Source of the DNA: Macrostomum hystrix
Lineage: Eukaryota > Animalia > Platyhelminthes
Assembly: GCA_950097015.1 (NCBI GenBank)
Contig: CATNEN010000034.1
Span: forward strand, 5,828,001-5,892,000
Direction of reading: 5' to 3'
DNA: 64,000 nucleotides
Positions 8,601 to 17,600 of this stretch are shown here, piece after piece; position 1 is the first letter of the stretch; each line of letters starts with the position of its first letter. The translations under genes were made by a program, and so were the position numbers. The notes beneath the pieces are model-generated. The model was not told where the DNA came from. It did not search any database and saw only the letters and a list, made by a program, of their open reading frames with translations.

Positions 8601-11600
8601 ATGGAACCATGTCGGCTCCAAAAACTATGCCAATCAGTCGCAGGGACCTTTGTTCTCAGCATCCTAGTCACCAGGATTCCCTTCATCACAATCTGGACCA
8701 TCGGCGGCGACTGTCGGGACCTTCAACAAAAGCACCCGATCAGCATCTCAAAGACAGCTGCATGCAGTCGTCAGTTTCTTCAGTCAGGAGAGATGATCAG
8801 TAAATTAAATTGACGATGGCGACCTTCTAAGCTGACCTGAAAACATACAGACAGACTTCGGGACATTCAATGGAGTGCCGACGCGCAGCCCTGACGAGCT
8901 GGCACCCCCAACAACGTCCTCTTGCGATCAAGGCTCTACAGCAGGCATGTCTGCATATTATTTAATGCTGTATTATCTTTCGTGTCATGCTGTAATATGA
9001 AGCTAATAAAGAATATAAAAATTAATTTTCGAAATGTCATTTGAGAGGTCGAGAGTTCGAATTTCTGCTAGTGGAACCCTCCCAGTCTATGGACTGAACA
9101 GTTGTAACCACATAAAAAAGTCCGTACCATTCAGACAGGTATTTAACAATCGATCAATTTCGGGCTGATCAATAACAGAAGCCGAGCCGTGTAGATTGGA
9201 TAAAAATGACACATCCGTAGGGCACAGGCTGGTTAGCGCGTCCTGCATCAGGTCGTCTGTGGGCAGCACCGGCTGGGGCGCCTGCGGCGGATCCGGCACC
9301 AGCGCCAGGGCGTAGCTGGTGCGGGGCACCGGGTCGCCGCGACGCGTGTGCGCAATGGAATGCCGCTTGCATTTGGTGCGCGTGCGAAAGCCCTGCGCAT
9401 CGTGTAGAATAGGATTTTATATGGCCTTGTAATAATATTGTGGAAGTATACAGTAGACCCGCAGCCAGCGATGAGGCAATACTGGCCATTCCGCTGACTC
9501 CTGAGCACACACGCAACCACAGATACGTACACAGGCACACACTCACACAGGGTTGTACAATTTACACTGACCTACTCATTGTCAGGCAGTGCTCACTATT
9601 ACAATGCCTTGGAGGTTGGCCCTAAAGAGGGGTCGGTGGCAGAGCGGTCAACGCGTTTGCCTCTCGCACCACGGTCACTAAGTTCGATTCCGCGGCGATT
9701 CCGCGGCGAGGCCACATTCATTTGGTGTGCAATTTACGCCCTTGAGGGGCAACAGTGAAATGTAGTGTACACTGCCTGACGATGAGAAAGTCAAGGCAGA
9801 TGTACACACCTGAATCGAGAATCAGAATCGAGTTCAGGCAACTTGGTGCGGGAAATAAACCCGGTTACCCCTTTGCCACACCACCATAACGCCTTGCTGT
9901 GTTTTAGTTCAGTTCCATTCCATTCCTTTCTATTCCAACTGCAATTAGTAGAAAAGGTTGACTACTGCTTAATTGGCAAAGGAGGTCAGAAGTTCGAATC
10001 TGTGAAAAATTCGAAAAATTGCCGAAAGAGAAGCGAGACTTTAGTCTGTTTAACAAGGATTAGACGGGGTAGAGATTAGAATTTGTTTCTCCCCACCCCT
10101 AGTCCGCTGATCATTGCAACAAACCTTGTGGCAGACATTGCAGAAGAAGCTAACACCATCGCCATGCCAATTGTCAATGTGCCGATTAAGATTGCTGCGA
10201 CTCTTAAACGACAGACTCGGGCAGCGGTCGCAGGTAAATGGTCGTTGGCCATCGTGCACTGTTCGTATGTGCTGCTGCAGTACATTAGCTGTACTATAAC
10301 AGCGTTGGCACATTGGACAAAAGTGTGGCCTCAGATTGCAATGACTCATCACGTGACGCTGCAGGTGGCCTTTCTTTTTAAAGATTTTGCCGCACTGATC
10401 GCACCGATGCGGCCGGCTGGGATCCGGAGCATCGGCCACCACGCCAAGACTGCGGGCTGGCGCTGAGGGTACCAGGACGCGTTGAAAATTAGCATCGTAG
10501 ACAATCTCCAAGGGTTCCAGAGCTGGAGCCGGGTCTAACTGTGGCTCCAGCACTCTTGAAACTGTTCGCAGATCCCTAGCCGGATGAGTGCGCAGGTGAT
10601 ATTTCAGATTGCTTTTAGTGATGAAACGGTGAAAGCAGTACTCGCAACTGTACGGATAGATTTCTTCGTGTCGTCGCATGTGTACCTGCGAGGTGAGGGT
10701 CGAATTTAGACAGAACTTGATTTGCCATTTTTTACTTACAGTTTGAGAGCAAAAGAAATGTGAATGACGCACTGTTGATCAGGTTGGTTACCGGCGAACT
10801 TATAGTTAGGAATAGTACATTAGTACTTAATAAAAGTCCACCGGCCGTAAACTGATCAGTTTTTGTTATTTTGTTTCTCCCCATATTAACAGCGCTTTTG
10901 CTGTTTGTCTGTTAAATACGACAGCCGAAACCATAATTAATGACATCGAACTTGACTTGGAGAGATTAAACTACTTGAAGTAGTAAAATTCAATAATATT
11001 CTATATGTCGGAGCCATCTAATTGCATACAGTACAACATGTAGATCAGGTTGGTTACCAATGAACTTATCGATAATTAGTACGCATGTACTTTTATAAAA
11101 GTCCATCGGCCGTAAGCTGAGCAGAATATTGTTTCTCCCTTTACAGCAGCATTATGCCGTTTGTCTGTTCAATACGAAATCAGAGACAAAATTGATGACA
11201 TCGCATTCGACAAAAGAGAGATGTACCACTTGCAGCTAGTAGTAGCTAAACTCATTTACTTGTACGTAGGACGAAATCAAAATACAGTGCAACATGTTGA
11301 TCAGGTTGGTTACCAATGAACTTATCGATAAAAAGTACGCGTGTACTTTTATAAGTCCATCGGCCGTAAGCTGACCAGTATATTTACACTGTCTCTCCAA
11401 TTTCAATCAGCACTTTGCTGTTGACTGCTTAATTCGATGTCAGAAACAAAAGTGGACAACATCGACTAAGACAAAAGGAGATGTATAAGTTAAGAAAATA
11501 ATATTAAATAAAACGTAGCGAAATAGAATATGTAGTTCAGGTTGGTTACCAGTGACATTATCAAAAAAAGAAAAGTACGCCTGTACTTTTATAGAAGTCC

Positions 11601-14600
11601 ACCGGCCGTAAGCTGAACAGCTTTTTACTACTGTTTCTCCCATTTAAATAGCATGCCGCTATCGAAAGTTAAATTCGATGCCCGAAAAACATGGTAAATA
11701 ACATCGAATTAGACAAAGGGAGACGGATGACCTATTCAAGTCAATTTCGTTTTCTGTAACTTACATCTGAACTTTGAATTTCGCAAAGTACATTGTGCTT
11801 TAAAAATGAAAGCTGCATTTTGTTCGTTTAGTTGTAAGCATTGAGTAATAAGACCAGGACGACAATGACATTTAATTGGACAGTGCTAGATTACTAGAAT
11901 ATAATAGTGTGTTCAGCAGCTTTTCTGTTAAAAGAAAATCGATCATCCATACTTAGATTTCAGTATATTGACACAGCGCTTTGGAACTTTAGCTCTATAA
12001 CTCCAACACAAAAGTTTTATTGGCAAATAGAAAGCTGTGCCCATTAAGCCACGATATTCAGTTTAATTTAGTTGTGTTCTATTAGCAAAATTGTAGAAAT
12101 TATCCCAATTTCGATTTATTGATCTAAAAAGACAGCGTTATTGTTGAACAGATGGATGTCCGGCGCACTCATCAGCTGGGAGCAGCAGAGTGTGCCGGCC
12201 AGTAATTCTGCCCATCCTTTGACGGAACAATCTATCTCCCACTTTTGTGTAACTCAGCCATGCGTTTTGAGACAGCCATTTATAGTATAATGATTATCTG
12301 TCAAACGAGGCTTTAGGAGATTAAGCTACGAGTAAAATTAAACAGTAATTACGTGTAAACACCACACTCCCAGGCACGAAAGCAGACAGAAGTTTAAGAA
12401 AAGCAATAAATAAAACGCTTGATAATAAAACTACTTATTTAAGTATTTTGACAAATAAGACAAACTTCAATGATCGCTTCAACTGAGCGCTTCAATGATC
12501 GATTCTAGCAGCTATTGTTGTTCAGTGAAGTGTGCTCAGTGAAGCAATCTTTAAGATAAGATTTAGGAATCTGCAAATTCAGAAATTTTCTATCGGACAG
12601 ATGGATTTCCGGCGCACTCATCAGCTGGGAGCAGCAGAGTGTGCCAGGCCAGTAATTCTGTCCATCCTTTGACGGAACTATCTATCTCCCACTTTTGTGT
12701 ATTTACGTCGAGCGTTACGACACAGTGATATAAACGTTTCTAGTTTCAATGTCAAACGCGACTGTGAGAGACACTCAAACAACTTGAGTTAAATCGATTT
12801 AAAATGTAAATTTGAAGCTCTGCTCGCACCGTCAAGTTTTAGACTAATTAAATGTTAAATAGCACTGCAAAAAAGTGTGCTAAGCAGAACTGATTCTAAT
12901 CACACTAGATTATTATGACGAAACAATGCAGCTCCGTACGTGTGTTGGTATTGTGGCGAAATCCGAGTCATAGATACAAAAAATGCGCTTCGATGGCTTC
13001 TGTGAGACTCTGTTTAGTTATTTCTTTTTACTTTTCGAATTCAATATTCACAACCTTGTTGAGCAGCGACAATTATTAAAAAGTAACTATTCATAATACA
13101 AATTCTTGTCGCGATGCGTTTGCAATAGTAAAAATATTAAGCAGGCACTGCAGCAGCAATTGCACGGGCGCGGCACATCTGAAGGCAGCGTACAGCTGTT
13201 CAGTCCATGGACTGAAAGGACGCCGCACCCACTCTCAATTATCCCAGCTGATGCTGGTACCAACAGCTAGTCGTCTCGCTAAAGGACACAAATTGTTGCA
13301 GTGGAGTCGGTAATCGAACCCTCGACCTTTAAGTTGGGAGTCCGACGCCACTAGACTACAACCCCTACTTGCGCAATACAAGTAGGCTAATAGTCACCCT
13401 TATTTAATAGGTATTAGCAGCTTTTCATGTTGGACAGATGGATTTCCGGCGCACTCATCAGCTGGGAGCAGCAGAGTGTGCCGGCCAGTAATTCTGCCCC
13501 ATCCTTTGATGGAACTATCTATCTCCCACTTGTGTAACTCAGCCATGCGTTTTGAGACAGCCATTTATAGTATAATGATTATCTGTCAAACGAGGCTTTA
13601 GGAGATTAAGCTACGAGTAAAATTAAACAGTAATTACGTGTAAACACCACACTCCCAGGCACGAAAGCAGACAGAAGTTTAAGAAAAGCAATAAATAAAA
13701 CGCTTGATAATAAAACTACTTATTTAAGTCTTTTGACAAATAAGACAAACTTCAATGATCGCTTCAATGATCGCTTCAATGAGCGCTTCAATGATCGATT
13801 CTAGCAGCTATTGTTGTTCAGTGAAGTGTGCTCAGTGAAGCAATCTTTAAGATAAGATTTAGGAATCTGCAAATTCAGAAATTTTCTATCGGACAGATGG
13901 ATTTCCGGCGCACTCATCAGCTGGGAGCAGCAGAGTGTGCCGGCCAGTAATTCTGCCCATCCTTTGACGGAACAATCTATCTCCCACTTGTGTAACTCAG
14001 CCTTGCGTTTTGAGACAGCCATTTATAGTATAATGATTATCTGTCAAACGAGGCTTTAGGAGATTAAGCTACGAGTAAAATTAAACAGTAATTACGTGTA
14101 AACACCACACTCCCAGGCACGAAAGCAGACAGAAGTTTAAGAAAAGCAATAAATAAAACGCTTGATAATAAAACTACTTATTTAAGTCTTTTGACAAATA
14201 AGACAAACTTCAATGATCGCTTCAATGATCGCTTCAATGAGCGCTTCAATGATCGATTCTAGCAGCTATTGTTGTTCAGTGAAGTGTGCTCAGTGAAGCA
14301 ATCTTTAAGATAAGATTTAGGAATCTGCAAATTCAGAAATTTTCTATCGGACAGATGGATTTCCGGCGCACTCATCAGCTGGGAGCAGCAGAGTGTGCCG
14401 GCCAGTAATTCTGCCCATCCTTTGACGGAACTATCTATCTCCCACTTTTGTGTAACTCAGCCATGTGTTTTAAGACAGCCATTTATAGAATAATGATTAT
14501 CTGTCAAACGAGGCTGCGGGAGATTTTATGCTAAGGCCAAACAAATAGTATATTTAGGAGTGCTAATGTGCTACGACTTGCGAAAAATCATGAGGTAAGT

Positions 14601-17600
14601 AGGAAACGTAATAACGTGAAATCCAATCATCTAATTTAGAAATAGTCTGTTGAACAGATGGATGTCCAGCGCACCCAACAGCTGGAAGAAGCAAAGTGCG
14701 ACGGCCAGTAATTCTGTCCATCCTTTTGCGGAACAATCTATCTCGTAAAGTGTCAAATACTTTTTTGTGTTTAGACAGCGATGCCTAACCAATAATGGTT
14801 CGGCTGCTAAACTCCAATATGAGAGATACCCGGCATAACGCCAGTCCTATTACTATGATGCTTTATCAAACAAAATAGAAGAATAGAAAATAGCACCAGG
14901 CCCACCTTGAGACTAGCCTGACTAGATAGCTTCTTGGCGCACTGCGGGCACTCGATTGGTCGCGAGAAGTGAGCGCGCAGGTGTGGCAGCAGAGTCTGGC
15001 GCAGACGAAATCGCTTATGACAGACAAAGCAGGAGAATGGCCGGTCCTTGGTGTGCCGACGCATGTGTCTGCGATTAAGATGGGTTAGGCATGGCTACAG
15101 AGTAACTACAAAATCAGTGCTTAAGTACAATTAGTTTAACTGCGATATAAACATACCTAGCCAAATCGACAATACGTCTAAATGCGTGCCGACACACCAT
15201 GCAGCGCTTACGATTGGCCACAGATTCGTAAGTGAAGCTGCGTCCCGTTGCTTTATCTAATTGCAGTTTTAACCAGCGGTTGCAGAGCAATAATAGTTGA
15301 AGAGGAAGATGCCTGCTGGTGTGGCTCAGCTGGCTGCTGCTTCTGACTAGCTGACAGTTTATCCGGTGATGATTTCACTGTCCTGCGCTTCGGCCTAGCG
15401 CTGCCACTTTTAGCTGGTTCTTCGGAAGAAGGCGCCGCGGCTGCAAGCGCAATGACATGGGTTGTATCAACTTGAACCTCAGTCGCATCGTCAGCGGCAT
15501 TGGTGTTAACAATTTCGTTGGCGTTGGCAGTCTCGGCGGCATTGTCATTGTCCGGCGCAGGCTCCGTGACAGTGCCGACACTCTTTGACTTTGGCGGCCT
15601 GCGTCGGCGAATCTTTTTAACGATGGCGCTGACCTGCAAATTTCCAGTTTCGGATATAAAAATAAAAAAAAAATGTTATTGAAGTAGAGTGATTTGAATT
15701 TATTGTTGAACAGTTGGAAGTCCGGCGCACTCATCAGCTTGGAGCAGCAGAGTGTGCCGGCCAGTAATTCTGTCCACGGAACAATTTATCTCCCACTTTT
15801 GTGTAACTTAAGCCATGCGTTTTGATACAGCCATTTAAAATGTAAAGCTTCACTGTCAAACGTGGCTGTAGGAGATTCATTTAAAGTTAAAAATTCCTTT
15901 ATATAAGCAACTTAGGACAATACTTTATTGCTTAACTTTACGATATGTATGGGCTATGGGTGTGAGTGGCAGGGCGGTCTAACGTATTTTGCACCAATGT
16001 CTTTAAGTTCGATTCCGCGGCGAGGCCACATTCATTTGGGGCGCAGACGCGGAGAGAAGGCTTGGGGGCTTGTCGTGCAATTTACGCCCTTAAGGGCCAA
16101 CCTCCAAGGCACAGTGAAAGTGTACATTGCCTGGCGATGAGAAAGTCAGGGAAAGTGTACACAAATGTGTGCGTGTGTGCTCAGGAGTCAGTGGAATTGG
16201 CAGAATTGCCTCCTCGCGCTGGCTGAGGGTCTACTGTCACCAAATGATGCGCCATTGCTCCCAGCCCTCCTGCAATTATTATTATTATTATTACGATATG
16301 CATATAAATATCGGATACAAGGAAGAAGAATCTGAGCAGGTTAATACCTGCGGATCGCTTGCACTGTCACCGTGCTGTCTAGCCATGTGCAGTTTGAGAT
16401 TGTATCGCTGGGCCGTTGAGAATGCGCACAATTCGCATCGGTGCTTGCTGCCAGCGTGCAGGCGTTCATGAGTGCGCAGGGTGGCCCGCTGGCTGAACGC
16501 CTTGTCGCAGGCCACGCATTTGTAGGGCTTCTCGCCGGTGTGCGACAACAGATGGCGGAGAAGCAGGAAAGATTTCGGGAATTGTTTGTTGCACAGGGGG
16601 CAACGCCTGGGCTGACTGGGGTTCACCAGTTGGGCAGCCCGAGTGCCGCGCAGCTCTTCAGCGGATTCAACAATATTTGAAAGGCCGTGCGACGTATCGG
16701 CGATGACAACGCCGGCTGCGGTGGGTATCTTGGATGGGCGACGAAATGTGCGACGTTTCTTTTTTGATCGCTGCTGCTGGAATAAATGCGTTGGTTTTGT
16801 AACTTTTAGCGATTAAAGACAGTACAGAGTGCAACTAGGTAAACAGCAAGGGATTAACCGATCACTAAGAGATCGGTGGGGAGGGATTAACCGATCGCTA
16901 AAAGATCGGTGGCAAGGGATTAACCGATCGATAAAAGATCGTTGGGAAGGGATTATCCGATCACTAAGAGATCGGTGGGAAGGGATTATCCGATCACTAA
17001 GAGATCGGTGGGAAGGGATTAACCGATCACTAAGAGATCGGTGGGAAGGGATTAACCGATCACTAAGAGATCGGTGGGAAGGGATTAACCGATCACTAAG
17101 AGATCGGTGGGAAGGGATTAACCGATCACTAAGAGATCGGTGGGAAGGATTATCCGATCACTAAGAGATCGGTGGGAAGGGATTAACTGATCACTAAGAG
17201 ATCGGTGGGAAGGGATTAACCGATCACTGAGATCGGTGAGAAGGGAAATATTACAATAGACAAAAGATCATCTGTAGTCAAAACGCAAATCTAACCTTTG
17301 AATTAGTGGTCTGTTGGTGCTGCAGTCGCTTTAGATTCACAATAGTAGCAGGTGTAGCAGAATTAGCAGCAGCAGAAGTAGGAACTAGAGCAAGATCGCT
17401 CAACGCCTCGACTGTCTCAGGCGAGGTCGTCTGTTGTTTGTCGAAATTCGAGCGAAGCTTAGAGCCGCAGACGGCGCGAAAATGTAGCAACAGATTTAGG
17501 CGCTGATCAAAATCGGCGCCGCACACCGGGCACTGATAGACCTCGTCAGTCCAGTGCAGGGAGCAGTGCGCGACAAAGGCCGACCGGCGGAGAATCCGCT

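Follow-up and report, generated by a model that had tools for sequence, protein, structure and literature searches.

Four tandem units in a zinc-finger gene intron of the flatworm Macrostomum hystrix are probable box H/ACA small nucleolar RNA genes

Organization of the four units and their host intron

The stretch of DNA analysed here (the window) comprises 64,000 nucleotides (nt) of the Macrostomum hystrix contig CATNEN010000034.1 (assembly GCA_950097015.1, positions 5,828,001 to 5,892,000; coordinates below are positions in the window unless a molecule is named) and carries on its minus strand a multi-exon C2H2 zinc-finger gene, one intron of which harbors four related repeat units, here called family A, that are probably genes for box H/ACA small nucleolar RNAs (snoRNAs). 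The host intron spans 10686–14905 (4220 nt, minus strand), with AAG/GUGGGC at its donor (14905) and cgcag/ at its acceptor (10686). Both neighboring exons, likewise on the minus strand, encode C2H2 fingers: the downstream exon occupies 10053–10685 and keeps an open frame to a stop at 10050, and the upstream exon occupies 14906–15068 and ends in ...SLK before the intron. The intron was assigned these limits because joining across the 14905/10686 boundaries restores one complete and perfect C-x2-C-x12-H-x3-H finger. A GUAAGU at about 11757–11762, roughly 35 nt upstream of the fourth unit, was considered as an extra splice donor and rejected, the finger rebuilt across 14905/10686 being the simpler model.

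The units of family A are direct repeats arranged head to tail at 10770–11724, with start-to-start distances of 266, 256 and 236 nt, and their limits were drawn from the folds and the box positions. On the minus strand, copy c1 (10770–10965, 196 nt) has the H box ACAAAA at 10869–10874, the 5' pocket strand UUUACG at 10846–10851, the 3' pocket strand AACCAAC at 10783–10789 and the ACA at 10773–10775, and 84 nt separate its predicted 3' end from the downstream 3' splice site of the host intron; copy c2 (11036–11222, 187 nt, minus strand) has ACAAUA at 11127–11132, CUUACG at 11111–11116, AACCAAC at 11049–11055 and ACA at 11039–11041; copy c3 (11292–11482, 191 nt, minus strand) has the degenerate H box ACAGUG at 11387–11392, CUUACG at 11365–11370, AACCAAC at 11305–11311 and ACA at 11295–11297; and copy c4 (11528–11724, 197 nt, minus strand) has ACAGUA at 11629–11634, CUUACG at 11607–11612, AACCAAC at 11541–11547 and ACA at 11531–11533. 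Pairwise identity among the four copies is just 68–81%, so the duplications that produced them are old. The spacers between the units measure 45, 69 and 70 nt and are mostly dissimilar. About 15 nt past ACA+3 are common to c2 and c3 (ACAUGUUGYACUGUAU; 11026–11041 and 11282–11297, minus strand) and are unlike the corresponding stretches of c1 and c4; this likeness may be a signal for processing or a trace of recent shared ancestry. The first-pass annotation, made from the sequence alone, had described four diverged repeats of ~190 nt, about 250 nt apart on the host strand of a zinc-finger gene intron, with freely diverged spacers; number, length, spacing, sense orientation and host were all recovered, and the divergence of the spacers holds for most of their length but not for the stretch common to c2 and c3.

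The 220-Mb assembly that contains the window was searched with BLAST and with a covariance model built from the four copies, and neither search found any copy beyond the four local ones, where the covariance search scored the best 150 first-look candidates and very diverged copies could escape it. By these searches family A is confined to four copies in one intron and is not a dispersed transposon family, the outcome that had been named beforehand as fatal to a guide RNA interpretation. A search of the 64-kb window against Rfam 15 returned no match at the gathering score.

Secondary structure and differential conservation of the units

Each copy, when folded singly, gives the same shape, which consists of a 5' domain, a single-stranded hinge, a 3' hairpin and a short tail. 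The 5' domain is forked, with a closing stem of 5–8 base pairs (bp) around two hairpins, one long and the other short; the 3' hairpin comprises a lower stem of 6–7 bp, an internal loop of 6 x 7 nt, an upper stem of 12 bp and an apical stem of 5 bp. Compared with dinucleotide shuffles, the folds of c1 to c4 have z-scores of -3.9, -3.6, -5.3 and -2.3, c3 being the most stable of the four. The consensus calculated by RNAalifold agrees with the single folds and contains 45 pairs, and 94% of the cells of the consensus structure are paired, versus 25–47% when the partners are slid by 1–3 columns. The minus strand folds better than the plus strand by 4–17 kcal/mol in every copy, and several invariant G-U pairs would become C-A if the units were read from the plus strand; the RNA therefore has the sequence of the minus strand, which is the sense strand of the host gene.

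An invariant ACA opens the hinge, which fits the H box consensus ANANNA in three of the four copies (c1, c2 and c4). A second ACA, also invariant, comes immediately after the 3' stem in all four; in H/ACA snoRNAs this box is placed three nucleotides from the mature 3' end, a feature that DNA alone does not show. The distance from the upper stem to this ACA is exactly 14 nt in every copy, and the end of AACCAAC lies 7 nt before it; a spacing of 14 nt is canonical for a pseudouridylation pocket, which by rule is placed 14–16 nt before an ACA or H box. The two strands of the internal loop, which would form this pocket, are nearly constant, with AACCAAC on the 3' side in all copies and a 5' strand that differs in its first base only (U in c1, C in c2–c4).

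Differential conservation was observed for the different parts of the units. The pocket bases are invariant at 12 of 13 positions, versus 23 of 93 other unpaired columns (Fisher p = 3.8e-6), and both ACA triplets are invariant across the four copies. Mean pairwise identity reaches 1.00 in the 3' loop strand, 0.92 in the 5' loop strand and 1.00 in the apical stem, with 0.38 in the apical loop and 0.69 over the whole RNA. Four stem pairs are altered on both sides with pairing kept, namely a G-C to A-U change in the upper stem (alignment columns 128/178), an A-U to U-A change in the lower stem of c4 (columns 113/194) and two more in the 5' domain. Constant loop strands amid paired stem changes are, as far as sequence comparison goes, the expected pattern of a guide RNA under selection. 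The hairpin-ACANNA-hairpin-ACA architecture seen at first pass (with a degenerate H box in the third copy), its invariant AACCAAC and (T/C)TTACG strands with the pocket 14 nt from ACA, and its two compensatory changes (G-C to A-U in the upper stem; GATCAG/CTGATC to GTTCAG/CTGAAC in the lower stem) were reproduced by the single folds, the consensus and the alignment, and the two compensated pairs of the 5' domain are additional to them.

Predicted pairing of the pocket with ribosomal RNA

Targets were scanned by the canonical rule: the dinucleotide U-N is left free, and the ribosomal RNA (rRNA) flanking it is paired on its 5' side with the 3' loop strand and on its 3' side with the 5' loop strand. 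The rDNA unit of this species (18S, 5.8S, 28S and spacers) was taken from the same assembly, and the scan covered 18S, 5.8S, 28S, the U1 small nuclear RNA (snRNA) and the rDNA spacers, together with U2, U4, U5 and U6 from the genome. Free-register duplex energies were rejected for ranking the targets, in that pairing of the lower stem and shifted registers break the H/ACA geometry.

Three rRNA sites stand at 9–10 pair-equivalents with about equal scores, and none of them is decisive: 18S U852 in GUUGGUU-UU-CGGAAC (7 + 2 Watson-Crick pairs, and 2 more after one mismatch), 18S U1784 in GGUU-UC-CGUAGGU (4 + 6–7 pairs, 2–3 of them G-U) and 28S U3391 in UUGGUU-UA-UGUG (6 + 4 pairs, 2 of them G-U). 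A score of at least 9 against 18S, 5.8S and 28S is reached by ~5% of shuffled guides, and three sites with at least 9 by about 1 in 2000, a figure that overstates the case as the sites are alike and the events not independent. No pairing comparable to the rRNA sites was found in U1, U2, U4, U5, U6 or the rDNA spacers (best snRNA pairings 5.5–7.5). Both 18S tracts that had been proposed as targets at first pass are present in the 18S of this species, at 845–855 and 1780–1791. The preferred one, GUUGGUU-UU-CG, does form 7 bp with AACCAAC and is ranked first here, and the choice is left undecided by the similar scores of U1784 and of 28S U3391, a site that had gone unlisted; the proposed alternative near the 18S 3' end, GGUU-UC-CGUAGG, corresponds to U1784 and scores about equally, without being decisive either.

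The 5' domain was also considered as a guide and rejected. Under two alternative pocket definitions its best rRNA and U1 pairings reach 6–8, with no target common to the copies, and its candidate loop strands are invariant at just 1–3 of 7–8 positions. As it has neither conserved loop strands nor a credible target, the 5' domain probably serves only the assembly of the ribonucleoprotein.

Correspondence of the candidate sites with human positions

The equivalent of human AAPsiAAPsiGmG lies at 815–822 of the 18S of this species, and UUUUCG lies at 850–855. Taoka et al. 2018 (PMC6182160) list in their supplement the corresponding human fragments AAPsiAAPsiGmG (861–868) and UPsiUUCG (896–901), and the offset to human numbering is +46. 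The tract GUUGGUU-UU-CG corresponds to human 891–901, and U852 to human U898, one base 3' of Psi897. The tract had been placed at first pass in the region of human Psi863/866; this was off by ~30 nt, those two sites lying in the equivalent of 815–822, and the known site of the tract is Psi897. The occupancy of human Psi897 has been given as ~23% and later as ~35%; this pseudouridine drops after DKC1 knockdown (PMC12043245), and it is attributed to SNORA44 (PMC9941101).

U1784, located 29 nt from the 18S 3' end, equals human U1840, two bases before ac4C1842. We know of no pseudouridine at its yeast equivalent. U3391 lies ~35 nt after the sarcin-ricin loop of 28S, in a stretch whose human equivalent would contain Psi4598 and Psi4606; Gm4607 of the same stretch is present in the Taoka table excerpt (PMC6182160). 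By our own numbering offset, with no human sequence compared, U3391 is two positions from the equivalent of Psi4606, and the three human modifications Psi4598, Psi4606 and Gm4607 all fall on the right base.

Relation of family A to U17/snR30

The U17/snR30 RNA carries the motifs m1 and m2 in the proximal loop of its 3' hairpin, with m2 (AAACCAU) 7 nt before its ACA, and m2 docks on rm2 (UGGUUU) (PMC2664660). The family A candidate tract GUUGGUUU in the 18S of this species is also the rm2 docking site. The m1 consensus of U17/snR30, tested against family A as AUAUUCCUA, is absent from it, the 5' strand being unlike, and the SNORA73 model gave no match to the family A region (Rfam at E <= 10, positions 10500–12000). 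A U17/snR30 (SNORA73) orthologue of this species was located at G000:C38:26648681-26648902 on the plus strand, with m1 as AUAUUCCU, followed by AAACCAU, 7 nt and ACA; it scores 48.9 bits against an Rfam gathering score of 74, so that standard annotation would miss it. The covariance model of family A reached 7.8 bits at this U17 locus, in a misaligned position, and did not recognise it. That family A is itself U17/snR30 was rejected, as the canonical U17 is found elsewhere, the models do not recognise each other's RNA and the 5' strand is unlike m1. Family A is therefore regarded as a separate RNA, which may bind the same stretch of pre-18S.

Family B and other features of the region

A second repeat family, family B, with units of ~200 nt on the minus strand, was observed at 12138–15892, where six copies lie in the same intron as family A and a seventh lies in the next intron upstream. 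Some of the B copies are 99–100% identical over 160–300 nt, others are partial, and one folds as two hairpins followed by ACA. The covariance model of family A gives no match to the family B copies, and the two families are therefore unrelated.

The host gene is fast-evolving and rich in poly-Q and low-complexity sequence. Protein searches for a host in other species returned one unrelated zinc-finger match (38%) for the 211-aa exon adjoining the intron and two generic matches for the 555-aa last exon; the 352-aa first exon, compared with the whole representative library, matched only poly-zinc-finger proteins at residues ~170–300 (26–38% identity), its N-terminal part being covered by no match in that library. 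These exon searches yielded no orthologous locus. A 33-nt tandem repeat of ~10 units (16829–17164), whose in-frame reading gives the 11-aa peptide INRSLRDRWEG, separates zinc-finger exons and is not itself coding. Positions 1819–2256 hold, on the minus strand, an open frame with a JAB1/MPN domain (E = 1e-10) whose start follows the stop codon of the 555-aa last exon by ~400 nt, and it is possible that this frame and the zinc-finger gene form a tightly spaced or operon-like pair in this trans-splicing flatworm. Outside the window, the intergenic spacer of an 11.6-kb rDNA repeat, which separates 28S from the following 18S, contains a full-length U1 snRNA gene (151.7 bits; G000:C15, minus strand).

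Discussion

Family A probably represents four paralogous box H/ACA snoRNA genes on the sense strand of the zinc-finger intron, a degree of confidence that applies to the RNA class and leaves the target aside. The assignment is supported by the fold, the boxes, the 14-nt geometry, the strand specificity, the conservation of the pocket, the covariation of the stems, the sense-intronic position and the lack of dispersal, and every sequence-level test that was run agrees with the guide RNA architecture recognised at first pass. Several observations weigh against it. The hinge of c3 (ACAGUG) lacks the last A of ANANNA, so this copy has no canonical H box; the 5' domain is forked and not a simple hairpin with a pocket; the units, at 187–197 nt, exceed the typical length of animal H/ACA RNAs; the comparative support comes from four paralogues of one genome that share a common ancestry; and Rfam at E <= 10 over 10500–12000 gave just one spurious match, no family fitting the units. 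On the side of the target, the U852 duplex has just two contiguous pairs on one side, and U852 is one base off human Psi897, with two other rRNA sites scoring about equally. Family A would be a further RNA family in a well-known class, and the understanding of the class is unchanged by it.

Explanations outside pseudouridine guiding were weighed against the same observations. A hairpin-forming tandem repeat of the intron without RNA function, or a set of guide genes that are all decaying, would account for the defective H box of c3 and would sit well beside the partial copies of the adjoining family B; copies that had drifted neutrally to 68–81% identity would not all have retained the two ACA triplets, the 14-nt distance and 12 of 13 loop bases, nor would their stems show paired changes, and this explanation is considered highly improbable. 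A non-modifying H/ACA RNA of the U17/snR30 type, which would dock on rm2 of 18S expansion segment 6 and act in pre-rRNA folding or processing, is only slightly less hard to credit. AACCAAC holds the AACCA core of m2, has the same 7-nt distance to ACA as m2 and is complementary to the rm2 tract UGGUUU (847–852 in this species), and the ~190-nt size, the several intronic copies and the invariant distal stem are all in keeping with such an RNA; on the other hand, the 5' strand YUUACG is unlike m1 and finds no complement close to rm1, a 7-nt loop strand in a 14-nt geometry gives the 7-nt spacing as a matter of course, and the genome has a canonical U17 elsewhere, with neither model recognising the other RNA. 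The least credible of these explanations is that the units belong to a mobile element or are small Cajal body-specific RNAs (scaRNAs) with a spliceosomal snRNA as target, for which only the overall hairpin form speaks: no UGAG CAB box is present in the 3'-hairpin apical loops (UAAU, AUGC, ACGC, AGGC), the best snRNA pairings remain below the rRNA sites, and the family is confined to one intron. By inspection, a microRNA precursor was also rejected, the stem being split by the 6 x 7 nt internal loop and the conserved bases being the loop strands rather than one 22-nt arm.

Within the H/ACA class the rivalry is between targets. 18S U852 is ranked first, as a tentative choice that falls somewhat short of an even chance, because all its pairs are Watson-Crick, 11 of the 12 invariant loop bases are explained and the variable base would not pair, and because U852 falls in a U-run that is pseudouridylated in human. 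U1784, in helix 45, has the top contiguous score, with 4 pairs to AACC and 6–7 to the 5' strand, which just 2–4% of shuffled guides reach, and the variable pocket base (C in c2–c4, U in c1) would pair with the same G either way; acetylation is known at the cytidine two bases past this position in yeast (C1773) and human (C1842). Against U1784 stand its 2–3 G-U pairs, the absence of a pseudouridine at 18S 1840 from the human sites of the Taoka table excerpt (PMC6182160), and the invariant AAC ending the 3' strand, which would be left unused although chance invariance of three unpaired columns is ~0.25 cubed; U1784 is an unlikely target. 28S U3391 is less likely again: by our own offset it lies in the human-modified stretch named above, but it is two positions off the equivalent of Psi4606, G-U pairs make up half of the four that it forms with the 5' strand, and it has the lowest score of the three sites, equalled by 5–9% of shuffled guides. 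It is doubtful, though a little less so than U3391 as the target, that the invariant pocket acts on two or more rRNA sites; all 13 pocket bases are used when the three sites are taken together. Should this hold, the flatworm lineage would have its own pseudouridines at two functionally loaded 18S positions, and the guide RNA would compete with U17 for the same pre-rRNA stretch.

If family A consists of H/ACA guide RNAs, each unit would be bound by dyskerin/Cbf5, Nop10, Nhp2 and Gar1 while the intron is still nascent. Cuts within the spacers would release the inner units, a step proposed because ten units (four of family A and six of family B) lie in one intron and exonuclease trimming from the ends cannot free the inner ones. 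The 3' loop would then base-pair with the rRNA sequences that flank a single uridine, which dyskerin would turn into pseudouridine. For U852, AACCAAC would pair with GUUGGUU (845–851), U852-U853 would stay unpaired, and CG of the 5' strand would pair with C854-G855, with two A-U pairs to follow past one mismatch.

Flatworm snoRNAs are almost unannotated and family A is unseen by Rfam, so that the four units offer a delimited entry and a covariance model for the annotation of Macrostomum genomes, as well as three precise predicted pseudouridines in flatworm rRNA (U852, U1784 and U3391). The locus also provides an animal example outside Drosophila in which ten guide-type units of two families share one protein-coding intron.

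Three known systems resemble family A in different respects. U17/snR30 is likewise an H/ACA RNA of ~200 nt with the AACCA core in a loop strand of its 3' hairpin and with several intronic copies, and it differs in that the m1 motif is present in U17 only. SNORA44, the guide assigned to human Psi897, would act on the same 18S U-run, GGUUUUCGG, as family A, whereas family A has no Rfam match to it at E = 10 and by canonical pairing would select the next U, the equivalent of human U898. A similar arrangement is that of the intronic H/ACA clusters of Drosophila melanogaster (Huang et al. 2004, J Mol Biol 341:669, as cited in PMC5932544), in which diverged isoforms of one guide, with a guide sequence in common, also lie head to tail, in sense orientation, in one intron of a protein-coding host; family A differs from them in having no sequence or Rfam match to the fly families, in its longer units and forked 5' domain, and in its setting among ten units of two families within a single 4.2-kb intron.

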